Assembly: GCA_946965045.2 (NCBI GenBank)
Contig: OX337237.1
Span: forward strand, 2,108,001 to 2,172,000
Direction: 5' to 3'
Length of the DNA: 64,000 nt
Source: Epithemia pelagica
Taxonomy: Eukaryota; Protista; Bacillariophyta
In this document: piece by piece, positions 23,064 to 42,165 of the stretch
Numbering within the stretch: the stretch's first letter is position 1
How the letters are laid out: each line of letters opens with the position of its first letter
The notes under the pieces: model-generated
The model's database searches: none
What the model was told of the DNA's origin: nothing
What the model saw: the letters and a program-made list of their open reading frames with translations, nothing else
Made by a program: the position numbers and the translations under genes

Positions 23064-26000
23064 ATGACAACAGAGACCTCTTTGCTGGGAAGCCCTTCCT
23101 ATGATGAAACACAATCGGACCAAACAGAAAACGTCAACTGGTATTCAAAAGCAGCAATAATCTGGGACCCATCTTCTGTAAAAAATGATATTGATTACTG
23201 GGATTCAGGTGACATCGAGAAATGGATCGAGGAGTATCCTTCAGACGGTATTGAAAGCAACAAAGAAGAAGTACTACTGCGAGGAATATCTTATGACATG
23301 TTGCATAGCATCGTAACAGTGTTGTCAAGCAAGCTCTTGAAGGAAATTGAAGTAAAACAACAATCCAATGAGCCCCGATCCATCCATTCTTCTTCAATGG
23401 TAGCGAATAAGCCATGCCTGGTCGTTGCAGTGGCGATTCCTGAAGGTTTCTACCTTCCCATTGCCATCTCCACAGTGTACGCCATGAACAAATATTATAA
23501 GGGAGGCCTTGGGTTCTCCGTCGCTCTTCTTCCACTGGATCCAACCGAAGGCGTTGATCGGGTCCATCATATTCTGCAAGATGCCCAACCGTACATGATT
23601 CTCACGGCGAGCGCCATGGATATAGTGCGATTGGAGAAAATAATCGTGGATATCTCGGCGAAAAACCCTGGTCCATCTGAATCAAAATCTTTAATCTCCC
23701 CACTGATGATCGATATTCCAGGCTGTGTTCATAGCATTGTGAAAGACACGCAGAGTCCAAGAAACAAACAGAAGAGGGAGTGTCTATTTGGTTTTCTTGA
23801 CCAACTTAAAACGGACGACTCAGAGAAAAACCAGAACTGTGAGCAAGCCCTATCTCACATCGTATATACTTCGGGAACAACAGGTATGCCAAAAGGCTGC
23901 GTATCATCCATGCGCTCGCTGGAGCACTATATCGAAATGAAAAACAGAGTGCATGGAATATCAAGTTCGTCCACGGTCCTTCTTGCATCGTCGATTTCAT
24001 TTGATCCATGTCTGTCGGACGTACTCGCAACTTTTGCTGCTTTCGCGACGCTGGGACTGACGCCCAGACAGGTTCTAAAATCTTCTTTGCATGCTTCATT
24101 GCGACGATTGGAGATCTCGCACATTCTTTGTACACCAACGCTTTGGAGCTCTCTCATGGCATCTGGAGCCGAACCCATTCATTTTCCTTGTTTAAAGGTC
24201 GTGGCCCTTGGTGGAGAACCCATTCCACCGCGAATCCGGAGAATTTGGGCGCGAAAACATAAGAAGACGACCTCAGAAGAATGTTATGGAGCCATGTTGC
24301 TTGCAACCTATGGCGTGACTGAAGCGTGCGTCTACCAAACAGCAGGTGAAATATGCTATACTGATGGAGATGGATCAGCTCAACCCCGGGGACAAGATGT
24401 TGGTCGTCCATTTCCTGGGATGGGTATTCGTGTGTGCAGTGAATCTGAAGATCCAAAGAAGCTTTTGGATCTGGATCAAGCAGTCGATGGTCCCGAAAGT
24501 GCTGGAGAGGTAATACTTTATGGAAGGCAGGTAGACAGCTTGTCGTCGTACTTGAATCAGGACAGTCTTTCACGGCAAAAATTCCTAGAACATGATGGCA
24601 CTTTCTTTCATCGGACCGGTGATCGTGGGATTGTAGATCGCAGAACCGGGAATCTTCATATTTTAGGAAGAATAGAAGGGGAAACAGGAATGGTCAAGTT
24701 CAATGGAGTGCGCCTGGAACTTGGAGAGATTGAAAATGCCTTGGTCGACAGCTTGGACAAAGGCGTCGTGGTTGACAGCATCGCAGGGGTCGAAAGGGAC
24801 CGATGCGAATCTGATCCCAAACTTGTGGCCTATGTCGTGTTAAGTCGCGACTGTTTGGAAGAACTGAAGCTCGTGGACTCAGTTCCAGTGAATGGTGCGA
24901 TCTGCATGGGTCCATTGTTGACGCTTCTTCGAGAACGGTGTCGACGCAAATGCCGCGTAGTTCCGAACATGTTCATTGTTGTTCCCCGCATTCCGCTTTC
25001 TCCAACCGGAAAACGCGATCGAAACAGTGCTCCCCTCACATCGAAGGCGGTACCCTCAGCGTCATTGACGGAGCAGGTGTTTTCCTCTTCCTCAACACAG
25101 CTACTCAAAGACTACAGCAGATTGGGTGCCTTCTTGGCGGAGCAACTTGTGGACTGTCTGAATCTTCATGCAAGCCAACAAGGAGCTCTTTTGACCACAA
25201 AAGCGACGTTTGACATGTTAGGAGGTGATTCGCTGGCGGCTACTCGAGTTGTACGAGCGCTCTATTCCCACTTTCATGGAGTAGCCAACTCTCGGTTGTT
25301 GGGAGGTGCTCATGGGATTCTCGATGATGACCGTTTTTCGCCTGTTCATTTGATCCAAGCTCCTAGCTTAGGAGACTATGCTGATTTTCTTGATCGTGAA
25401 ACTGGTGGCGCAGTTAAGGGAGGAACCACTGCAGAAATTCTCAAGCATAGATGTTCCAGTGGTAGGGATGAAAGTGGAATCGTATCCGCATCCGATAGTG
25501 GCGAAGTCTCAAAAGACAACGGTATTGCCGACAATATCCTTAATGAAGCTCTTTTGGAAGTATGCACTCGAGGACACGCCATTCTTGCGCTGGCTTTGCT
25601 CGAGGTGGGTGCGGATCCCAATTTTAATGCTGCTGACACACGGAATCATCGGTTAGGCAAAGTTGGTAGCAGGAACGAACGTAAGCAGGTTTTCGCATCA
25701 ACTCCGCTTCACCACGCTTGCCTTCGGGGGAATCCTATCTTGGTGCAAGCTCTTCTGGACAAAGGTGCAAAAACTACAGTACCGGATGCGTCGGGTACGT
25801 TTCCCGTTCACCTGGCGGCTGGTGGTCGTAGAGGTGAGACTAGCGCATCTGGACATTGTTACTGGGCGTGTGTGAGCCTCCTACTGGACCAAGCGCGCCT
25901 TCCATTGACGATGAAAGATGGAAATGGCCAGACTATCTTCCACTGTGCGGCCCGCTCTGGACAAGATGTTGTGTTAGAGAAACTGTTGGAACGACTGAAT

Positions 26001-26342
26001 GAGCAAGATGACACAAAAGACGAACCCAAGTTGCTCTCCTCTTCCAAACATAGCCTGTCGCCTTTGAACTGGCGCGATCGATGGTCGCGAACCGCCGTGC
26101 ATTGGGCTGTCATCAATGGTCACTTGAGCACCCTTCAGATCTTGCTCAGCGCTGGCTGCCATGCTGATCCAGTGCTTCCGCACCGAAACAAAAGCACAAG
26201 CGCAGCACTAGAGCGTCCATTGGATCTCTGTGATCGTGTATATATGTCTGCTAGTGGCGGATCAGCTTGCAGTTCGAAGCGCACAGACTTGGGAATGGCC
26301 ATGAAAAAGTTATTGGAGGAATCCATGGCTAAACGAAGCTAA
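23064..26342 (+). CDS. Single-module NRPS-like protein: adenylation - thiolation (PCP) - ankyrin repeats
   Basis: A-domain cores YTSGTTGMPKG, SFDP, GGE, YGVTE, RTGD, KFNGVRLELGEIE and LSPTGKRDR. PCP motif FDMLGGDSL (Ser codon 25230). Ankyrin repeats TPLHHAC, FPVHLAA, TIFHCAA and TAVHWAV. Confidence 0.9.
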   Translation: MTTETSLLGSPSYDETQSDQTENVNWYSKAAIIWDPSSVKNDIDYWDSGDIEKWIEEYPSDGIESNKEEVLLRGISYDMLHSIVTVLSSKLLKEIEVKQQSNEPRSIHSSSMVANKPCLVVAVAIPEGFYLPIAISTVYAMNKYYKGGLGFSVALLPLDPTEGVDRVHHILQDAQPYMILTASAMDIVRLEKIIVDISAKNPGPSESKSLISPLMIDIPGCVHSIVKDTQSPRNKQKRECLFGFLDQLKTDDSEKNQNCEQALSHIVYTSGTTGMPKGCVSSMRSLEHYIEMKNRVHGISSSSTVLLASSISFDPCLSDVLATFAAFATLGLTPRQVLKSSLHASLRRLEISHILCTPTLWSSLMASGAEPIHFPCLKVVALGGEPIPPRIRRIWARKHKKTTSEECYGAMLLATYGVTEACVYQTAGEICYTDGDGSAQPRGQDVGRPFPGMGIRVCSESEDPKKLLDLDQAVDGPESAGEVILYGRQVDSLSSYLNQDSLSRQKFLEHDGTFFHRTGDRGIVDRRTGNLHILGRIEGETGMVKFNGVRLELGEIENALVDSLDKGVVVDSIAGVERDRCESDPKLVAYVVLSRDCLEELKLVDSVPVNGAICMGPLLTLLRERCRRKCRVVPNMFIVVPRIPLSPTGKRDRNSAPLTSKAVPSASLTEQVFSSSSTQLLKDYSRLGAFLAEQLVDCLNLHASQQGALLTTKATFDMLGGDSLAATRVVRALYSHFHGVANSRLLGGAHGILDDDRFSPVHLIQAPSLGDYADFLDRETGGAVKGGTTAEILKHRCSSGRDESGIVSASDSGEVSKDNGIADNILNEALLEVCTRGHAILALALLEVGADPNFNAADTRNHRLGKVGSRNERKQVFASTPLHHACLRGNPILVQALLDKGAKTTVPDASGTFPVHLAAGGRRGETSASGHCYWACVSLLLDQARLPLTMKDGNGQTIFHCAARSGQDVVLEKLLERLNEQDDTKDEPKLLSSSKHSLSPLNWRDRWSRTAVHWAVINGHLSTLQILLSAGCHADPVLPHRNKSTSAALERPLDLCDRVYMSASGGSACSSKRTDLGMAMKKLLEESMAKRS

Positions 26343-26562
26343 TGTCAAAGAGTTTTATGCGAATTCCATGAGACAAGTTGAAAGGATGCTCCGGCACTCG
26401 ACACCAATCCGACACAAAATACCTGTATTCGAAATGAAAGTTTTATGACGCAACGACTCATTTCTTCCGTCTGCTGATCTCATGACTAAGAAATGGTACA
26501 GTGATATGGCTTTACGAAATGGCAAGTCGGACAATGGATTTAGCTGTCTTACAATGGTGAAA

Positions 26563-27513
26563 TCATGATGCGGCCCTAGTGCGTTCAAGATAATGACGTT
26601 CGGCCTCTTCCATAATCGCCTGTGCTTCGTCACGCTCGATTTCTTCTTGCTTGAGTACATTTCGCAGCCGACCCCGTTCCGCCAGAGCTTCTCGCACGCG
26701 GTTGGCCAAGTTGGGAATCGTTTCTTGAATTAGCCGAGTTGTGGCCTGCCGGGTGGTTTTCTCCAAAAGTTCCAGACGGCGCAACTCGGCTTGTGCTTCG
26801 GGTTCTGAGTGGGATAACATCCGTTTGAGTTGTTCGTCCAGCCAGTCCAACCGAGACTGCCTTTGTTGACTGGCGGTTTCTTTTGCTCGAATACGGAGTT
26901 CCATTGCCTCAACATAGATACGTCGTTTGATGGCATGGTCAAGAAAACTTACTTGCTGGTCGTTTTCGAGTCTCGTAGTGGCCAAAGAAGAATCATTTGG
27001 AGAAGAGGATACTTCAGGCATGTCCGCCTTTGTTTTGTTTGTTCCTTGAACGATAGCTTCCTCTTGGTACCGCTGCTCTTCTTTGATATCTTGTTCGCAT
27101 TGGGCAATGACTTTCCGAAGCTTGATAGAGCGTTGTTCTTGTTCATGTATCTTCCTTTTCATTTTGTGATACTCCTGTATATTCGTATAGCGCTCCAGCT
27201 GTTGTTGGGCAAAGGCGGCCTGGGTGTTGGCATGTTCTCGTTTCTTTGCCTCTAGTTTCGCCTCCATCGATCCTACCTTTTCCCGGATCTCAACAACGGA
27301 TGAGCGCTCATTCACCAGCTGTTGAGCACGCTCTTGCATCCTCGTCAAGGTCGTCTGTTGCCATTCCGAAAGTGAGGAAGATGACGACAACGCCAATCCT
27401 GAACGAGCTTTTGCCGTCGCACCGTTGCCAGAAGACGATGGCAACATCGAAGGGCGCGTGGATTTTCCATCGTCCCCTTGGGAACCTTGGGATAAGATGC
27501 TGAGACTATTCAT
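26563..27513 (-). CDS. Hypothetical coiled-coil protein
   Basis: 316-aa E/Q/R/K-rich heptad-like ORF. Confidence 0.7.
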   Translation of the reverse strand: MNSLSILSQGSQGDDGKSTRPSMLPSSSGNGATAKARSGLALSSSSSLSEWQQTTLTRMQERAQQLVNERSSVVEIREKVGSMEAKLEAKKREHANTQAAFAQQQLERYTNIQEYHKMKRKIHEQEQRSIKLRKVIAQCEQDIKEEQRYQEEAIVQGTNKTKADMPEVSSSPNDSSLATTRLENDQQVSFLDHAIKRRIYVEAMELRIRAKETASQQRQSRLDWLDEQLKRMLSHSEPEAQAELRRLELLEKTTRQATTRLIQETIPNLANRVREALAERGRLRNVLKQEEIERDEAQAIMEEAERHYLERTRAAS

Positions 27514-27952
27514 GTGATTGATTCCTCTCTCTTCCTTCGGATCAACAAGACTGGGAAATGTAGCGACCGTGACAGATGAATGCTCAAAACTCCATGTATC
27601 AAAGACACGACTTTATTACAGTGGGTGACTGCGCAGCACAACAAAAGTTTCTACACGATAAGATATCACCGTTGAAAACAAATGCTCAATCAGATCGTCA
27701 TCGATAAGGCTTCAGCCGTCTTGAGAATTGGGTCCGGCGGGATCACAATCTCTGCGCGCCAGCCTGTGCCTACCAGTCATCCTCTCCGCCTGAATGATTT
27801 CGCGTTTCGCGATTCGCGTAGGTCGGAAGCAAGTAGCAATAAGATCTAAGATCGTTCTTCCCATTTCCAATTCCGATCCCAAACATCAGACAAGAACATG
27901 AATATAGCTCCAAATACGAGTGGAATTTGCAAACAGTGTCAAACTTGTTTCC

Positions 27953-29149
27953 CTAGCTTGCTTCTCTTCGTAGGAACCTCCACGTAACTTTTGCTTTTTC
28001 CCTAGATTCATCTCTTGGATGAAAAGTGGATTCACAAACGAGCACAGTCCTCGCATCGCCACTTTCTCCATCATTCTCTTCGCTAATGTATCGTCTGCTT
28101 TCAAAGCTCCCACCGCCGTACTTTTGCACTCCATGTAACCAGGACCGGTGGACCCGACCCTGGTCCTCCCACCAAGCTTCACAAGTCACAAGCTCACCGT
28201 CTGCAGTGAAAATTTCTGCTTTCTTTGGCGTCTTTGGTGCAGAACTAGAGTTGGCTTCTGCTTCTTGACATGCATTGCTAGCGGAATCGAAAATGGTTGT
28301 GGTCAATGTTCGCTCCCACACTCCACGAATATTTTCGCCCCGAATGAACAAAGTGGCACCATGGTCGCTTTGGACCATGGTCTCTGTAGTCATACCAGCA
28401 ATTGACAAAGCAACAGTCCGAACAATCTTGGGCTGTCCAAGAAGCTGCAGGTACTGATCGTATTCCTTTTTGAATGATTCTGTAACGATAAGATCCCAGT
28501 CCCCCGATAAATCCACGCCCTCTGCGGCTGTGGCAGAATAGGAAAGCCATTCTGTTGAGATGTCGGAATGCTGTGTTGTCGAGTGGTTTGCATCTTGTTC
28601 ATTCGTTGCGACCGATCGCGAGTCAGTCATGTTCGCGTCCGATAGGGATATCTCGAAATCCAGTTCTATGCCTGTCGAAACGTCCTCAGGTTCTGTGTCT
28701 TTTCTCGATTTCACCCAACGATACAACCAACGAAATGGAAGGCTTACCACTTGCCATAGCCTTCGGCGTATGGATATTCTTTCCATGTTGCTTTGATCAA
28801 AATCATGTTCCTTGGAGACTGACAATAGTGCCGTTCTGTGCGTGTTGACTTGAGCGAACAGGGTCGAGATGGTTACTGAGTGTGCCTGTTGCCTACGTGA
28901 TGAGAATGAATGATCCAGCGTCGACGAAAGATCCTCCGAGTTGTGGGTCTGACTAGGCGGCTGGCCATGGTGGTTCGGTCGGAATTGATGCCGAGAAAGC
29001 TCCTGATGACGCGACCTGAAACTCGTGAATATGCTGGTCTTCCAAGATGACTTTTCAGATCTTGTAAACGTTACATAATTTAGTGAGAAGCTTTGAGAGC
29101 GCTCGAAGTAAAGCAGTAACGAGAGAATGAACCAGATTATATCCGCCAT
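27953..29149 (-). CDS. Predicted plastid-targeted protein with C-terminal FABP/calycin-like domain
   Basis: Signal peptide ending SQS-F. DLSGDWDLIVTESFKKEYDQYLQLLGQPKIVR resembles the FABP N-terminal GxW...F..YL..LG motif. Confidence 0.6.
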   Translation of the reverse strand: MADIIWFILSLLLYFERSQSFSLNYVTFTRSEKSSWKTSIFTSFRSRHQELSRHQFRPNHHGQPPSQTHNSEDLSSTLDHSFSSRRQQAHSVTISTLFAQVNTHRTALLSVSKEHDFDQSNMERISIRRRLWQVVSLPFRWLYRWVKSRKDTEPEDVSTGIELDFEISLSDANMTDSRSVATNEQDANHSTTQHSDISTEWLSYSATAAEGVDLSGDWDLIVTESFKKEYDQYLQLLGQPKIVRTVALSIAGMTTETMVQSDHGATLFIRGENIRGVWERTLTTTIFDSASNACQEAEANSSSAPKTPKKAEIFTADGELVTCEAWWEDQGRVHRSWLHGVQKYGGGSFESRRYISEENDGESGDARTVLVCESTFHPRDESREKAKVTWRFLRREAS

Positions 29150-29499
29150 GTTGGCATCAAGGATTTTGCAGTGTTGGCCATTGTCATCGGCATATGGTGG
29201 GGCGGATATAACGTAGACGACCCCACAATGCAGACACACTTTTGATACTCCATCTACTGGTAGACTACACCTTACTGCTCCTATTGTAATCCTCTAGGAG
29301 TACCTTATTCAGAGTTGAGGGGCACGATAACCATACGGAGTCCGTATGGAACCCCTAAAAGAAAAAAGATGTGATAGTCGTTCACTAGCATATTCGTACT
29401 TCCCTGAGTGGTATCTGATTTCTCCAATCATGCATAGTTGGCAGCATTTACTACTTTGTCGTCTCGTTTCCTGATCCCGAGAGTAACACTTTGAATTTG

Positions 29500-30207
29500 C
29501 TAGTTTTTCCCACTGGAATCGCCCTTGCTTTCAGGTGTATCTTCATCCATGCTGATGTCCATAGAAGCAGCCACAGATGCAGCGATTCCTTCTTCAAGTT
29601 CGATGCTCCCGTCCGACTCGAACTCACCATCTGTTCCGATGTGGATTGGCCAGTATGAAACAGTGTCATCGGCCTTTTGAACCGCCGCTCGCCAACCGTT
29701 CATGATTTCCTCGTGTGTTTTGACGGCCCGTTTTCTTGTCGGACCAGACAAATTCTTCAGTATGAACAAGGGAGCATAATAGAGGATCAATAAGGGTTGG
29801 AAGAAGTATCGCACGGCAGGTGGGAAGATCGAAAGGGTGTACTTTGTCAGCTGTCGAATCCAGGCGCCCGTGGCAGTGAATGTTGCCACATACAGAGCAG
29901 CGACGAAGGCGCGACATGATGCTCGAAATGCTGTCATGGAAAAACCGGTCAACTTGCGTAATCGAGATCGAATCGTTACTTTGGGGTTGTCATCTGAAGC
30001 ATGAGAAGAATCAACCGACGCCGAGAGCTTCTGAGCGGTGTTCATGGGGGAAGATGCAAACGAGGTCCCTCTCCAACATTGGCGGACGGTGGTGACAGGT
30101 TGCACCATCAAGGACATGGTCGGAAGAGGAAGGACAATTATTGTTGACACTGTCAGTAGAAGCCATATCGCTACCGAGCATGTCCACTGGATCGATGTTG
30201 CCTTCAT
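29500..30207 (-). CDS. Hypothetical protein with signal peptide and internal hydrophobic segments
   Basis: Open ORF with hydrophobic N-terminus (MKATSIQW...) and two amphipathic or transmembrane segments. Confidence 0.65.
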   Translation of the reverse strand: MKATSIQWTCSVAIWLLLTVSTIIVLPLPTMSLMVQPVTTVRQCWRGTSFASSPMNTAQKLSASVDSSHASDDNPKVTIRSRLRKLTGFSMTAFRASCRAFVAALYVATFTATGAWIRQLTKYTLSIFPPAVRYFFQPLLILYYAPLFILKNLSGPTRKRAVKTHEEIMNGWRAAVQKADDTVSYWPIHIGTDGEFESDGSIELEEGIAASVAASMDISMDEDTPESKGDSSGKN

Positions 30208-30825
30208 TGTTTCCAGTCGACTTGGACACCGACCGCTTCCGTCTAATGTGCCTGCCGTTGGGGTTCGGAGAGATGAAGTCAATGACAGGGTTCAGGGTTC
30301 TGCTTTTCTACTCACTAGAGTAGAAAGAACCTCTACGCTAGACTTCAAGTACTTGTAGAAGGCAAGCCGTTGGTCAGATTGCGGTGACACGATGACATCT
30401 TGTTGACTCGACATGTTGTGTGGGAGTGACGGCATTCGTGACCCAGTTCATGTGTCTCAAATTTCCCCAGGGGCGATCGCATATTGTAAAAACCAGAAAG
30501 GGGGCAGACGTTAGAAGTGCCCCTCCTGTAACCGCAACCTGGATGTAGCCGTTATCAGATTGCTCTATTCGTACTGAAATCTTTACGCTGAACATCGCCC
30601 ACCATCTCATATAGTACTGTAGATATGCGTGATGTATCATGTTTTCGTTTCCCGCTTTTCTCGATATCTTGGATCGGATCTTTCGAATCTCAGCAATCTG
30701 CAATGCACGAAGGATGAAACAGCCTTCCAAATTCCACATCGGTGCAGATATTTGGATCCACCGCCAACATAGCTTATGCACCTGAAACGAAGTTGATTTA
30801 CGAGAGGACTTTCCAAAGCAATATC

Positions 30826-32338
30826 ATGTCGTCGGCTAAACCCCAAAGCTATGGTGCTGTTCCTACGACGGACGCTGGTTTGGACCGAGACCGTGCACCA
30901 GTCAAGAAGAAGAAATGCAACGATGTCTTTTTTGCGTTGCTCTTTCTAGCCCATATAGGGTATATTGGTTATGCGTGGGTAGCTTCCTCTTCTACCGGTG
31001 TTGAAGAAGGCAGTGGTGGTACAGATATGTTGCCTACGTCGGTGACGAACAAGTTCACAGAAAAAGGTGTGGTTAAGTTCGTTGCCGCCATCACCGGCGC
31101 GGCGTTGCTTTTGTCTTCTCTCGCCATTATCTTCATGACGACCTTTTCCGATGAACTTATCGAGGTAGCTTTGGCGGCACCTATTCTTGGGTTCCTGGCA
31201 GTCGGGGGCTATGGCATTTACATCAGCAAAGTGTGGATGATGGTGACAGGAGGTGTCGGATTCTTAGTCTTTGTGATTTTGGCCTGTATGGTCCGAAACA
31301 AGATTGATGTAAGTGCCTCGGGACACCTCATATGCATAATATCTATCACTTCTCTATTATATTTCTTACGGGAATGTCTGACACTGGTTCCAGTTTGCTG
31401 CCGCAAATCTTCGCACGGCTTTGACCGTGGTGCGTACCAACTTTGGTTTGATTGTCGTGTCTTTTCTTTTGGAAATCGTCGCGTTTGGATGGACCGTTCT
31501 CTGGTTTGGTGTTACTGGCTCGGCCATGAGCGACATGGGTTGGAAAATTGTGTTCTTGTATTTACTTTCATTCTTCTGGACGCACCAAGTCATTAATAAT
31601 TTGCAACATACCATTGTCGCAAGTGTGTTGGGAACCTGGTGGTACAACCCTGAAGACGCCAACTGGTGGTGGGATGATGGGTTGAATCGTGCCCTTTGTC
31701 ATTCAACGACGTATTCGTTCGGTAGCATATGCTTCGGATCGCTCCTTGCCAGTACCGTGCAAGCTCTTAAATGGGTTCACAGGCTGTTCAACCGCCAAAA
31801 CAATCGATGCGGCAAAGGCCTGGCGGCAATTATCAATTGCTTTCTTTCATGCTTGCAAGGAGTGGTAGAGTATTTCAACAAGTGGGCCTATGTCATGGTT
31901 GGACTTCACGGCGAGTCCTACATTGAGGCTGGTAAAGAAGTAATTAGCCTTTTCAAAGCTCGCAACTGGGAGGGCATTGTGGAAGATGGACTGGCCGACA
32001 TGGTGATGTTTTTTATGAAGTTTGCCATTGCCGTTGTGAGTGGTTTGTCTGGCTGGTGGCTAGTGAATCACGACAATGACATTTTCGTTGGCATTGGTAT
32101 CGATCCCGAAGATGACGACGCAGCCGGTTTTATGGCTGGCTTTCTCATTGGCTACGTTGTCGCTTCAATCATGATGGAGTTGGTTTCTTCAGCTGTCAAT
32201 GCCGTGATTGTGTGCTTCGCCTTATCTCCGGCGCCCTTTAAACAACATTACCCAGATCTGTGCAATGAGATGTTGGCGGGTTGGAAGAAAGCTTATCCTA
32301 GTGAATGCGAAGACGACTTCACCTCCATTGAACCTTAA
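30826..32338 (+). CDS. Choline transporter-like protein (CTL/SLC44/PNS1); intron 31309-31393
   Basis: CNDVFFALLF, FFWTHQVINN...VASVLGTWW, YSFGSICFGSLL and YFNKWAYVMVGLHGESYIEAGK. Splicing gives KIDFAAANL. Confidence 0.9.
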
Positions 32339-37113: not shown

Positions 37114-37917
37114 CTACGTGGTTTTCACCTTTTCTTTCCGTCTGTTGACCCAGTTCGTAATCCTCCGTTCGACTGATCCAACGACCAAGGCACCAACGAC
37201 GGATGGCACAATTAAAAAAGGATAGGGTAGTAGTCCATCTTGGTTTAGAATAGTTTGCTGAAGGAGGTCAATCAGAGTGGACTCAACATACGTGTAGAAC
37301 AAAAAGGCGTTCGTCGACCCAACTGTTAACCCAACGACGACCTGTTCCCAAGTATGGAGCTTGACTTGAACTCTGTACAAGAGACTTGTTGCAGTGAATA
37401 GCAGAATTGGAAACAACAACCAGAATGGTTGGTGCAGGAAAGTAAAGGTACCAATGAATCCTAAACTCATGGCATGAGAACTTGGCATTCCTCCATCACT
37501 CGGTTTCAAACGTAGCTCAGAAACCACCATATCAGGTGGTCTTGTCTGATTGATGATTTTCTTCAGTACTTTTCCCAAAACTGCATTGCCAATCGACCCG
37601 ATGAAGAATGCGGACATGACAGCGTTTCTTTTCCATACTAGCACTACATAGAATAGGCCGCTCACAAAGAGTGATGTAGTTCCTCCCACAAGAGACACCA
37701 GCGAGTTTAGTTTTTCAGGATCATTGTCGTCTTCGCTCTTCTCCATTGTCGACTTCAGCAACGCCTCTCTTGGCCTCTGCCTGCAAAAGGTGCCCGGGGC
37801 AGCAGGATTCCTTGATTGACGATCCCCCAACAACGCAAGCGAATTGGATGAAAGGAAAGCACTCTGAGAAAGCTGAAAACAGAGGATAATGTGGGACAGC
37901 AGAAGTAATCGTTTCAT
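37114..37917 (-). CDS. PAP2-family lipid phosphate phosphatase (plastid LPP-epsilon / dolichyldiphosphatase-like)
   Basis: KKIINQTRP, GMPSSHA and YRVQVKLHTWEQV motifs. Signal peptide SQS-AF. Confidence 0.88.
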   Translation of the reverse strand: MKRLLLLSHIILCFQLSQSAFLSSNSLALLGDRQSRNPAAPGTFCRQRPREALLKSTMEKSEDDNDPEKLNSLVSLVGGTTSLFVSGLFYVVLVWKRNAVMSAFFIGSIGNAVLGKVLKKIINQTRPPDMVVSELRLKPSDGGMPSSHAMSLGFIGTFTFLHQPFWLLFPILLFTATSLLYRVQVKLHTWEQVVVGLTVGSTNAFLFYTYVESTLIDLLQQTILNQDGLLPYPFLIVPSVVGALVVGSVERRITNWVNRRKEKVKTT

Positions 37918-38393
37918 GGAGAACTTTCATACAACAGGGATCAGTTCGAAAGGTAATCATTCCCAATTCCCATGGTTTTTGAGCGGGTGTACTTGTATAA
38001 TTATTTCGTGTAAGAATAAAGTCGAAACGCGACCGTGTGACGTCAGTCGCGTTAGTCTTGCCCATTTCGGTTGCTGACCAGCCGACGAAGAGGATCGTTT
38101 CTCGGTGTGTTACGATGGAGACAGACGGAAAGTTATCGAAATCTCAACAACTCCAAGGCCTCAGTTGTAGAAGGAAATGGACCAAACCGAAAATCGGTGA
38201 TGTTTCCCTGCACGTCGTAATTCTGCAATGCCCAAACGTTGTCATGTTGACAAGCTCAAGGTGCTGGGGTCTTTTTGTTTATCTTTATTTGATGCGTTAT
38301 TATGTTGACTGCTATTGTTGACATATGCCATGCCATTCTCTGTCACTAATTGTTTGGAAGTTTGAGGGCAATTGCTATTTGGTTGTACTGCGA

Positions 38394-40507
38394 TCAATAC
38401 ATTGCGCTTTGCACAACCTTGTCGCGCAAAGTTATTCCGCATTCAAAAGGATTCAAGACCGAACATACACGCTTTGTCTCAAACATAAACTTCTTTTCGG
38501 GTTTGTTGTGCGCACTTAGCCAACCCTTCTCGCGGAGTTCCACCACCACAGTATACACAAAGGCCATTTCTTCGCGCTCCGAAACTTTCTTCTTCTTCGC
38601 CCTGTCAGATACAAAGACCTGTTCCGTATCGACACCTTCCCAGAACCTTTTGTAATCGTCCTCTGTCTTTTCCTGCCATCCGATGGGAGTGGGATAACGT
38701 ACGAGTGACAAAATTTTCCGGTTGTCGCCTGTTCGAAATTGATAAAGCTCCGTTTTGGGGCTGATTGACTTACCGAGTGTCATGGAACAATATTGGTTGA
38801 AGATTTGTTTACAGTTGAACACGTTTACAACACCATCATCACCGTCGATTTTTGCTGATGAGGTGCGATTGATATTTCCCTCGAAAAAAGGGTATGGATG
38901 ACGAGAGTTCATGTTGGCAACATTGACCGAGTATATATGACTCCCGATCTCTCGCTCACTTAGACTGAGGGAAGTATCACGAGCCGTTTCGAGCATGGCA
39001 GATTCCTTTGCTCGTTCCGATGTAGGATTATTTTCAAAATAATAAATCCTTGCATTGGGATGACGGGCACGTCCAGATCCTTGAATGTGTGCCTTTGTTG
39101 TCGCAATGGTGCTGAAACGAACCACGAAGGAGCAATCAGAGACATCAATGCCTTCTTCCAAAGCTGCGGTTGCGACAAGGATACGGGCTGATCCTTCAGC
39201 AAAGGCTTCCAATTGTTTTTGTCGATCGGCCTGCGTTTGATACCCTGTTCCTGCAACCGCACCACACTGCGGTGGACCTGGGTTGGCTCTGCGGCTCACT
39301 ACTGGGCTGGAACCAGAATGACGGTCGGTCAAATGGTCATTGATTTGTTTGGTCATTGCGGAGACTAGTGCGACTTGCTCGACAAATACAATTCCTCGGT
39401 GACTGTCTGACTTTCCTTCCCCGATGAGGATATCTTCCAGGAGGCCCAACGATCGCTTTAATTTGTGTGATTGCTGTGAGGCGCGGGAAATTGCAGGATC
39501 ACTACGCATTCTCAACAACAGTTCGTCCATTTCAGCACGCAGAAATGGTATGCTTTTCTTAATGTTTTCCGCATGTCGTATGGCTGCCTGTGAATCGCCA
39601 CTTTTCTCCAGATTCCCGGCCTTGGCAAGGACTTGTGCACAGATGACCTTTTCCACATAGTAGAAGAGTGCTTCAGAACCAAGCTCGTCAAACACATGAG
39701 AACAGCGTGAAACCACTTTTTCGATTTCCTTATCTGGATCGGAGATAGATTTCTTTGAGTGATGTCAACATGTGCTTCAATAATCCCTTTGATTCTTTCA
39801 TTATCGACTCTGCCGTTCCTTTCATCTTGTCTCCACTGGATCCATCGAAAGCTTTCATTACTTAACCTAGACTCGATGTCGGGGCAAAATATCGTGCTGG
39901 TCATGAGGGCCTCCAAGTCTTTCCTCTTTTTTTCTTTATTGACAAGTGACCCATTGACAAAGGATGCCGTTAGTCCCAGAATTCGAGGCAGTGCTGAAGA
40001 TGACCCAACACCGCGACTCCCCATGAAAGGAATGACACCATCTCGCATAACGCTCGCCATCGGTGAGTTTCCAACAGCATTGTGACATTCGTCAAACACC
40101 AGCAGGCTGAACTGGCTTAGATTCATGTACTTGTCAGTAACAAAGGCTTTCAGAAATATGGCAGCTGTACCTAGCATGATTTGGCATGAATGGAGGGCAT
40201 GGTTCCATGATTGCTCTTCCCACTGAGCTTGTTCTTCTCCGACCAGACGTTGAACAACGACATGATTGTGCTTTGAGTCGAGACAATGCTTTCGACAGTA
40301 ATCGGATTGTTGTTCAACGAGAGGTCGCGTCGGTACCAAGAATCCAATCTTCAAATGAGGGTACTTTTTCAAATAGTGTTCAATCAGGCGAGCAGCAACT
40401 AAAGTCTTTCCTGTTCCGGTTGGGAGGCACACAATGGTATTTTGCAGTTTGGCTTTTTCGAGGCACTCCGCTTGATAAGGCCGTAGCTCAAACCGCCGTT
40501 CCGCCAT
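38394..40507 (-). CDS. Stand-alone Dicer/RIG-I-type DExD/H helicase with possible DUF283-like tail and no RNase III; 1-nt frameshift at about 39755
   Basis: LRPYQ, NTIVCLPTGTGKT, DECH, RILGLTAS, GIVFVE, LVATAALEEGIDV and HIQGSGRAR, then VVNVFNCKQIFNQYC. The two ORFs join if one A is added to CAAAG. Confidence 0.8.
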
Positions 40508-40913
40508 GGTCCAAGTTCTCTTCAAAACCTCAAAATATTCGTCACTTCTGTTGAGCGCGCAGACACCGGAACACAGTTCACTACGAGTATTCCACGTGTA
40601 CAAAAAGTTCGAGTATCAAGCAGCACCTTTAAGTTCGATGTTATGAAAGTAGGAAGAAGAGTGGCCGTTTCTCCTCCATGGTCTCCATCCATTAAATCAT
40701 TGCTGCTTGTTCAGCTTCACTCCAAAGACAGAAACAGCAATTGCCTCAACAGAAAAATGGACGCTTCTGGTGACAAACGCGTTTGGAAAAATGGCTTGTC
40801 CCACTGTGTTCAGAATAGAATTATGGGTTTGATGAGTTCCCCAACTATTTCCTTCATTCCAGGGGATCAACCACTGTTCCCTATCGGCATGCTTGGTAAC
40901 AAAAACATTGTCC

Positions 40914-41570
40914 CTAAAGCTCGTTGGCCTTTCGTTTTCTGTTCATCGGTAGGCACATGGCCGGTTTTCCAGTCCCGAAGGTGTCCTTTACAGCTTCAGC
41001 ATCGTCTGATTTTTGCTTGTTTTCATGCCAGAGGAGATTCAAGTTCACTTCTCCTACGCGAAAATTCCAGTTTTCCGATTCAAACCTCTGTTTCCGCGCT
41101 TCGTTGCGCAAGGGACATGCATACATACGTTGGCCAGTTGAACTGCAATAGGGAAGGAAACCTTTTTTACAAGGAGTGAAGGGAAGAGTCATTTCCCCTT
41201 TGGAACAAACAAATCGTTTGCCAGCCGACTCAATTGCCTGGCCTTGGAGAGTAGTGTTTCCAGCTGATTGCATATAATGTGCACCACCATACAAATCACC
41301 ACGCGCCGTAGGAAATCCACACACAAATCCCCATGGCACTCGATCCTCCAGGATACTGGCTTCAATGCGATATCATTCGCTTGGTAAGATTCCACAATCG
41401 TTCTGTCTAGCAGAGTCTCCCGGTAGTGGTTTGTGAACCGTTGCATTTACTGAAGGGAAGTACAAATAGGAATTCGTCAAACTCTTTGAGTTTGCAGCAT
41501 CGTTTAGCTTCTTCGAACGCTCCTTTTGCAATCGGGATGATTTTCGTCGGGACTCAATGTTTGATCGCAT
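40914..41570 (-). pseudogene. Unknown ORF interrupted by an in-frame TGA (41373-41375)
   Basis: ORFs 41373-41570 and 40914-41339 share a frame and are linked by GAA TGA TAT CGC ATT. No family was recognised. Confidence 0.35.
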
Positions 41571-42165
41571 GTCTTCTAGCAGAATAATCCCAAAACGGAG
41601 TTAAGAAGGGATTTGCTTTCATGGAAAGAATTCCGATCGTCCCATGTCCCATGTGGAGGTTGCAGGTGGCTACCGGTAGGTGTCGTCGATGAGATCTGCG
41701 AGGGCGGGTATGTGTCAACAGTCCCAACGACCACACTCCCAAGGTTCCCCCTCATCACTCATCACTCATGCAGTGATCTTATTACGAGAGTACGGCTTTC
41801 TCATTCTTTGCTTTCTCATTGGTCCAAAAGTCTTTCGAAGAGAGATAAAACAGACCCAAGAGGGAAAGGGAACGATCACACCCATCAGAAGCAGCCCAAT
41901 ACAATTGTGACTATTGTTGGTTGGTCCTTAGTCGTCTTGGTCCTTCACAGCTCCGTTGGGCTTTAGAGACACACTCTAGCGATTAATCCTTTGCATCTTG
42001 GAACTATGTTTTGAATGATGTGAAACGCGTCGCTGAGGAAGAATGACCAGAAAAATGAGGGGCAGTTGTAAGACAAGTCTTTCCACAAAACATCTCTTTC
42101 CAAGCCCAACGTTTCCACTACAACATTTCGACCAGACGAAACGACAAACCAAACCATCATCAGCC

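Follow-up and report, generated by a model that had tools for sequence, protein, structure and literature searches.

RNA silencing and antiviral sensing are poorly understood in diatoms, and the textbook view of diatom Dicers comes from two model genomes, in which the Dicer-like proteins carry no helicase. In other organisms, DRH proteins and RIG-I-like receptors (RLRs) act on double-stranded RNA (dsRNA) as sensors or as cofactors of RNA-dependent RNA polymerase (RdRP) or Dicer. Isolated constructs of the helicase and DUF283 domains (HEL-DUF) of animal Dicers bind dsRNA with nanomolar affinity and are active ATPases; DUF283 forms a cap over the helicase cleft when dsRNA is bound (PMC10159624). 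In Dictyostelium and oomycetes, a Dicer-like helicase is fused to RdRP (PMC4791657). Further, a protein of Thalassiosira pseudonana that combines a helicase with a dsRNA-binding domain (dsRBD), Tp3_20605, was proposed to act in RNA silencing (De Riso et al., 2009; PMC2724275). Here we describe a gene at positions 38394-40507 (minus strand) of a 64,000-nucleotide stretch of Epithemia pelagica DNA (contig OX337237.1, positions 2,108,001 to 2,172,000; hereafter the window). The locus is likely to encode a natural free-standing HEL-DUF protein of the Dicer/RLR clade that acts on dsRNA together with the silencing machinery, and the copy in the window is frameshifted.

Domain architecture and fold

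The two reading frames of the locus were searched as separate pieces, not as a joined protein. Pfam detected ResIII (3.6e-20) and DEAD (5.3e-19) in the first piece and Helicase_C (1.5e-12) in the second, and nothing else above noise. Among the sequences of solved structures, the best match of the Hel1 piece was the HEL-DUF of AncD1D2 (1.5e-31, 113 bits), followed by RIG-I (about 1e-20) and Dicers (about 1e-18) and, more weakly, by DRH (6e-16), FANCM (3e-15, 59 bits) and Hef (4e-14). The top matches of the second piece were AncD1D2, DRH, LGP2, DCL1 and MDA5; over both pieces, the matches to DRH ranged from 6e-16 to 3e-10.

The helicase motifs were intact in the window, and motifs I, II, III and VI (QxxGRxR) were invariant or nearly so in 43 family members. 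On the minus strand, motif I (Walker A, PTGTGKT; 40403-40423, nearly invariant), motif II (DECH box; 40082-40093, invariant) and motif III (TAS; 39962-39970) lie in the first frame, whereas motif V (39141-39173) and motif VI (QGSGRARH; 39060-39083) lie in the Hel2 RecA domain (39066-39416, placed by Pfam and the motif coordinates).

The full-length fold was built on P0002, an intact Epithemia orthologue to which the window protein is 62-72% identical, using the family alignment rather than the joined frames of the window. The model (predicted local distance difference test, pLDDT, 88.6; predicted template modelling score 0.88) consisted of Hel1, a five-helix Hel2i, Hel2, a two-helix pincer and a C-terminal dsRBD-like alpha/beta cap. 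When it was compared with known structures using Foldseek, dsRNA-bound AncD1D2 HEL-DUF ranked first (E 2.5e-31; template modelling (TM) scores 0.63/0.66), followed by Drosophila Dicer-2 (TMq 0.66-0.68) and Arabidopsis DCL4. RLRs scored near 0.50, and FANCM was at rank 50 with 0.47. By alignment, the Hel2i bundle (residues 231-331 of the P0002 model) mapped to approximately 39462-39728 in the second frame. The two long pincer helices after Hel2 (helices 4-19 and 27-45 of the AlphaFold2 (AF2) model mf55f1ad385c3, which align to the pincer region of AncD1D2) mapped to 38901-39026. Thus, the protein is a Hel1-Hel2i-Hel2-pincer helicase of the Dicer/RIG-I-like clade with a DECH box. An earlier note, made from the letters of the window, had proposed a helicase of this type, and the matches to solved structures, the motifs and the P0002 fold bear it out.

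The same note had seen a short segment with the dsRBD fold of Dicer DUF283 behind the helicase. An AF2 model of the window's own C-terminal ~200 residues, made with 47 aligned sequences (pLDDT 86), contained the two pincer helices and then a helix, three strands, a short helical insert and a long helix. This alpha-beta-beta-beta-(insert)-alpha domain superposed on DUF283 of Dcr-2, mammalian Dicer and DCL4, and the fold fits DUF283 and dsRBDs, not the zinc-binding C-terminal domain (RD) of the RIG-I type. When a profile of the domain only was compared with 19 canonical DUF283s, it aligned over the whole domain at 69-79% probability, pairing ..IFNQYC.. of the first helix with ..LLNRYC..LP.D, and likewise the last helices, which end in G.L....P. 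Further, weak hits of PF03368 were obtained in 9 of the 47 family members. The superposition and the domain-only profile support the segment, and we consider it very probable that the region at 38529-38813, directly after the pincer, is a divergent DUF283 (the Dicer dimerisation domain, with a dsRBD-like fold) in which strand 3 and the last helix are separated by a helical insert.

Pfam detected no RNase III in either piece, no PAZ or platform at E<=0.1, no RIG-I-type RD and no ERCC4-like nuclease or MHF-binding region. The protein had no CARD and no DRH N-terminal domain; it begins with Hel1 at residue 6-9, where the orthologues also begin, and ends about 45 residues beyond the DUF283-like domain. 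A domain search found no RNase III domain anywhere on the contig that carries the window (C10). The next gene downstream, which lies outside the system, encodes an unrelated PAP2-family phosphatase (37114-37917, minus strand; Pfam PAP2 4.2e-10) and is 477 bp beyond the end of the helicase gene, so that there is no room for nuclease domains. The earlier description of a stand-alone gene without PAZ or RNase III therefore stands.

Relatives and phylogeny

A word search returned 96 relatives. Approximately 40 of these were full-length and colinear, 650-690 aa in length, and occurred in both pennate and centric diatoms (Epithemia, Seminavis, Thalassiosira, Attheya and Bacillariaceae); they covered 99-100% of the C-terminal piece; more distant relatives came from dinoflagellates, a haptophyte and Mesostigma. 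The window gene is the local orthologue of this ~665-aa protein family, which is conserved across pennate and centric diatoms. An exhaustive profile search returned 1921 representatives at E<=1e-30, the best 150 of which span the whole profile through the C-terminal domain.

Some relatives carry the same HEL-DUF head in fusions. P0104 of Cymbomonas tetramitiformis, named 'dicer-like protein', adds three dsRBDs and two RNase III domains, and P0106, a transcript of Polykrikos kofoidii, adds a dsRBD and three Z-alpha domains, which are otherwise typical of innate-immune nucleic-acid sensors. In other fused relatives, the head is followed by Dicer_dimer and RNase III or by dsRBDs alone. P0097 (Seminavis robusta), P0098, P0099 and P0101 have the DUF283-like C-terminal domain twice in tandem and form the sister group of the diatom family. 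Since this group includes P0097, Seminavis holds two paralogues of the HEL-DUF family besides DCL1. In databases, family members bear the automatic names 'Dicer-like protein' and 'endoribonuclease Dicer', and some are called 'ERCC4-related helicase'. We found no description in the literature of the helicase and DUF283 family or of the wider modular clade, only remarks from 2009 and 2011 on the T. pseudonana helicase and dsRBD protein.

A quick maximum-likelihood tree was calculated from 79 helicase cores and rooted on the FANCM of this genome; because the method is a quick one and the FANCM branch is long, inference on deep nodes is limited. The diatom stand-alone family formed a clade (support 98) with the window protein inside it (98-100), sister to the double-domain proteins (100), and both were nested with the fused relatives in a clade of 51 rows (99). 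The canonical Dicers of fungi, animals and diatoms formed a separate clade (96), and the helicase and dsRBD family formed a third (99). When the stand-alone family was forced together with diatom DCL1, a group defined after the tree had been seen, the cost was 75 log-likelihood units (approximately unbiased (AU) test, p 0.0009). Thus, of the phylogeny proposed in the earlier note, the separation of the stand-alone family from Dicer and FANCM was obtained, in a tree without RLR and DRH sequences. A search for the latter from a second stand-alone helicase of this genome (on C16, described below) returned protist relatives only.

The frameshift and the intact allele

The earlier note had placed a single gene at 38394-40507. 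The boundaries are correct, since the start codon ATG at 40507 and the stop codon at 38396-38394 agree with the orthologues and are colinear with those of P0002, P0003, P0004, P0008, P0022 and P0024. However, the gene is not a single open reading frame (ORF) in the window: it is divided into frame A (39730-40507; residues 1-259, comprising the RecA domain of Hel1 and the beginning of the Hel2/Hel2i region) and frame B (39728-38394; the remainder of the gene). The minus-strand ORFs that contain them overlap, one at 39512-40603 (Met at 40507, followed by RPYQ and Walker A) and the other at 38394-39716, which stays open upstream to about 39761; frame A, if unshifted, continues to the stop at 39512.

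In the alignment with six diatom orthologues, frame A fits up to ...LSPIQI and frame B from EIEKVVSRCSHVF, with no gap at the junction. Because the orthologues are ungapped here, a single missing base rather than an intron accounts for the change of frame. The window is one base short at 39729/39730 compared with the orthologues and with two public runs of the same organism and study from two samples (X2 and X3). On the plus strand, the window reads CC-TT whereas X2 and X3 read CC-T-TT, and the extra base yields minus-strand ...cag ata aag gaa atc..., that is, QIKEIEKVV, which matches the orthologue consensus. An intron was also considered and rejected; the only in-frame GT...AG candidates are 36-56 nt long and would remove conserved residues.

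The alleles were compared by mapping assembled contigs of the public runs, not raw reads, to the window. In X2 and X3, the extra T behind 39729 was present at full depth, giving one ORF of 704 codons (2115 nt with the stop codon, compared with 2114 nt in the window). These runs are DNA-like, as judged by contigs of up to 509 kb, and differ from the window by 10 coding single-nucleotide polymorphisms (seven synonymous and three nonsynonymous), none of which introduces a stop codon. In contrast, a third run (X1) lacked the extra base at a depth of 343, a deletion that it shares with the assembly. The kind of this run is not on record; it may be RNA, since its longest contig is 19.6 kb, its depth is uneven and there is a gap in its coverage of the intergenic spacer. 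That X1 is not a copy of the assembly can be seen from its 16-nt insertion and from four flanking sites at which it and the window have different letters. Thus, the single uninterrupted frame of the orthologues was absent in the window and X1 and present in X2 and X3. The frameshift, confirmation of which by reads, together with a lack of expression, had been named in the earlier note as counting against its proposal, is accordingly borne out by the assembly and one run and contradicted by two.

The window letters at 38261, 40708, 40883 and 40891 were matched by none of the three runs. The 440-aa ORF has one other record, on a contig that is 100% identical to the window over 7323 nt and is hence from the same assembly and not independent. 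We consider it very probable that the deletion is truly present in the assembled strain, and take it to be polymorphic in the species. It truncates the protein after Hel1, and the frameshifted copy is therefore probably a recent null allele. A 245-nt contig of a metatranscriptome run (X6), 98% identical to 38611-38855 in the DUF283-like region, hints at expression of the gene in nature.

The flanks of the gene also differed among the runs. The X1 contig over the gene reaches about 41807, some 1.3 kb beyond the start codon on its upstream side. At 40600-41800 the window contains only short ORFs without a Pfam match, and this stretch may represent a long leader, a transcript that overlaps the gene or a non-coding RNA. 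In X2 and X3, 7 nt are inserted in this leader, behind 40551. Near the end of its contig (window 38116-38160), about 240-280 nt beyond the stop codon, X1 has its 16-nt insertion, behind 38154, and an A>C change at 38150; this may be a 3' end variant.

Other silencing and helicase genes of the genome

A full-length Dicer was found on C4 (1018085-1023511), where an ORF of 339 aa with DEAD/ResIII is followed, after a 75-nt gap (an intron or a frameshift), by an ORF of 1443 aa with Helicase_C, Dicer_dimer and two RNase III domains; Pfam detected no PAZ in it. Helicase-bearing DCL1 orthologues of 1500-2000 aa were present in Epithemia, Seminavis, Pseudo-nitzschia, Mayamaea, Amphora and Cyclotella, and several of these diatoms contain the stand-alone family as well. 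A Dicer without a helicase is therefore not the rule among diatoms, and the statement of the earlier note that the diatom Dicer lacks the N-terminal helicase does not apply to this genome. Further RNase III genes were detected on C8 and C1. On an 83-kb contig of Seminavis (CAICTM010000262.1), the stand-alone helicase (69767-71785) and DCL1 (about 25366-31719) are about 38 kb apart, whereas the two genes are on C10 and C4, respectively, in E. pelagica; linkage is thus not conserved.

The FANCM/Mph1 orthologue is a 703-aa ORF on the minus strand of C8 (2129729-2131840) that matches the translocase domain of human FANCM at 7e-92 and Hef at 1e-48. The second stand-alone Dicer/RLR-type helicase, at C16:2900464-2902194, had C. 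elegans DRH and MDA5 as its best solved-structure matches. Its full-length relatives in Nitzschia, Thalassiosira and Fragilaria are 620-660 aa long and end in a dsRBD, and it is probably of the Tp3_20605 type of De Riso et al. (2009).

RdRP domains were found at five loci at least, and Piwi domains at three. An open frame of at least 1548 aa on the minus strand of C17 (1121500-1126143) joins an RdRP to a superfamily 1 (SF1) helicase (AAA_11/AAA_12, UPF1-like), and a second RdRP, nearly a duplicate of the first, is found at C17:1088756, at a distance of about 35 kb. The contig of the window itself has a weak match to the Piwi domain (30 bits together with in-frame neighbours) at C10:2363754-2363963, about 190 kb beyond the window; the stronger Piwi genes are on C6, with one in-frame TGA, and C7.

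Discussion

From its domains and relatives, we infer that the intact protein binds dsRNA, has ATPase activity and plays a role in silencing or defence. Because the isolated HEL-DUF of animal Dicers binds dsRNA and hydrolyses ATP, the activity of the protein would most likely be that of a dsRNA-dependent ATPase or translocase. It would clamp dsRNA between the helicase cleft and DUF283, as the isolated HEL-DUF of animal Dicers does; ATP hydrolysis would be stimulated by the dsRNA, and the protein would translocate on the dsRNA or measure it. It may act in trans with the full-length Dicer, several RdRPs and Argonautes, as a sensor or cofactor, and would then be functionally closest to the nematode DRH proteins. 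The suggestion of a DRH-1-like dsRNA sensor in the earlier note is a possible one.

Several observations weigh against this proposal. The function of the family is a predicted one, and what can be checked of the ATPase is its motifs. The homology to DUF283 is moderate: PF03368 is below threshold in the window protein, a C-terminal hidden Markov model profile returned only spurious designed-repeat hits among the sequences of solved structures, Foldseek with the isolated C-terminal model found nothing at E<=0.001 (E >= 0.12), although Dicers crowd its weak list, and hhalign with a longer C-terminal profile aligned the last helix only, at 46%. In the tree, the three clades meet in an unresolved base, and the family is not placed relative to RLRs and DRH proteins, the sequences of which the tree does not contain. 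The run data are contigs, from which transcription, strand and allele balance cannot be read. Further, the frameshift indicates that a culture can live without the gene, so that an essential role is less likely.

Other identities of the protein were also weighed. The architecture corresponds exactly to the N-terminal third of a Dicer, early diatom models had Dicer-like proteins without a helicase (PMC2724275), and further RNase III genes exist on C8 and C1. Under the split-Dicer idea, which the earlier note had raised, the protein would be the detached helicase half; it would have to pair with a Dicer-like protein that has RNase III only, and the two would restore a canonical Dicer in trans. 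However, this genome and those of the other diatoms listed above encode a complete Dicer, in several of them beside the stand-alone family; further, the stand-alone family is not sister to diatom DCL1, as indicated by the tree and the AU test, and no conserved linkage was seen, which makes a split Dicer quite improbable. A DNA repair translocase of the FANCM/Mph1/Hef type is suggested by the name 'ERCC4-related helicase' on some relatives and by FANCM and Hef among the weaker matches. Nevertheless, the true FANCM orthologue on C8 has the opposite score profile and stands as the outgroup on a long separate branch, and the clustering with FANCM that the earlier note had considered was not seen. 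With FANCM as low as it is in the structural ranking, no ERCC4 or MHF-binding domain found by Pfam, and Hel2i, pincer and DUF283 being features of Dicers and RLRs, we regard this identity as excluded by the genome's own FANCM.

The remaining alternatives concern the frameshift. An assembly error, with the gene intact in the assembled strain, would be in keeping with the short homopolymer at the site (TT vs TTT), with the four window letters that no run matched and with the lack of an independent second record of the 440-aa ORF. We nevertheless consider it rather unlikely, as X1 also lacks the base and an error in a two-base run is not expected. If the deletion is instead the first step of loss of a gene that is dispensable in the species, the locus would be a decaying pseudogene with no current function, its product ending after Hel1 and 72 out-of-frame residues; the presence of the deletion in both the assembly and X1 is consistent with this. 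However, it is a single lesion; apart from it, the two frames stay open and colinear with the orthologues right up to the final residue. Together with the intact frame in X2 and X3, the mostly synonymous allelic differences (7 of 10) and the retention of the family across diatoms, these observations make a pseudogene unlikely. A -1 slip at the G-AAA-AAG run (39723-39717), an A-rich near-slippery heptamer 6-12 nt after the break, would re-enter frame B, and some full-length protein with four residues changed might thereby be made. The heptamer is imperfect, an intact allele exists that has no need of recoding, and no orthologue needs a shift; such a leaky rescue is thus very improbable. We therefore prefer the reading of a natural free-standing HEL-DUF protein, of which the assembled strain carries a frameshifted copy.

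On the evidence of this locus, diatoms have three separate helicases of the Dicer/RLR clade besides FANCM: the full-length Dicer, the helicase with dsRBD and the nuclease-free helicase with DUF283. The last of these is part of a large protist clade, hardly annotated so far, in which immune-like domain fusions occur. A natural protein consisting of HEL-DUF only provides a ready-made test of the Dicer helicase alone, which has so far been addressed by truncated or resurrected animal proteins only, and intact and frameshifted alleles in one species offer a natural knockout for comparison. As a more speculative and doubtful extension, diatoms and many other protists might use the free-standing HEL-DUF as an autonomous dsRNA sensor or translocase, a protist counterpart of RLRs and DRH proteins. 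The clade would then be modular, the free-standing protein being one of its forms, and the same sensing head would be combined with varied outputs (RNase III pairs, Z-alpha, dsRBD arrays or none), with loss-of-function alleles segregating in natural or cultured populations.

Comparison with known systems

The closest described counterpart of the window protein is the HEL-DUF of animal Dicers, as represented by AncD1D2 and Drosophila Dicer-2. The order Hel1, Hel2i, Hel2, pincer and DUF283 is the same, the DECH box and the arginine finger are conserved, and the length of the AncD1D2 construct (652 aa) is similar to that of the window family (about 650-700 aa). Further, the best match in both sequence (1.5e-31) and fold (E 2.5e-31, TM 0.63-0.68) is to this module, in its dsRNA-bound closed states. 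In contrast to these laboratory truncations, the module in diatoms is the whole natural protein, and its identity to them is approximately 24%. Its DUF283 is divergent, with a helical insert of about 25 residues, and falls below the Pfam threshold. The protein also differs from animal Dicers in having no platform/PAZ, RNase III or C-terminal dsRBD.

C. elegans DRH-1 and DRH-3 and the vertebrate RLRs are, like the window protein, nuclease-free stand-alone helicases of the same clade. However, the window protein lacks their RIG-I-type zinc-binding C-terminal domain, CARD and worm-specific N-terminal domain, and its C-terminus is DUF283-like. The fold match to RLRs (TM about 0.50), which were compared by sequence match and fold and not in the tree, is weaker than that to Dicers. 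In Dictyostelium and oomycetes, a Dicer-type helicase has likewise been uncoupled from RNase III and placed elsewhere in the silencing machinery. There it is fused to RdRP, whereas the helicase described here is free, and the RdRPs that we examined in this genome carry no such helicase, one of them having the SF1 domains AAA_11/AAA_12 instead.

Two other proteins of the same genomes are related to the window protein. Diatom DCL1 (on C4 here; also in Epithemia, Seminavis and Pseudo-nitzschia) has the helicase and DUF283 module in the same organism, but it is 1500-2000 aa long, has two RNase III domains and falls in the clade of fungal and animal Dicers; the DCL1 of C4 is only 38% identical to the window protein over 80 residues. 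The helicase and dsRBD family, represented by the C16 helicase, provides a second nuclease-free stand-alone Dicer/RLR-type helicase, and by its published domain description Tp3_20605 would belong to this family and not to the HEL-DUF family. Unlike the window protein, the members of the helicase and dsRBD family fall in a separate clade (99), have a Pfam-detectable dsrm instead of the DUF283-like domain and match DRH and MDA5 best.

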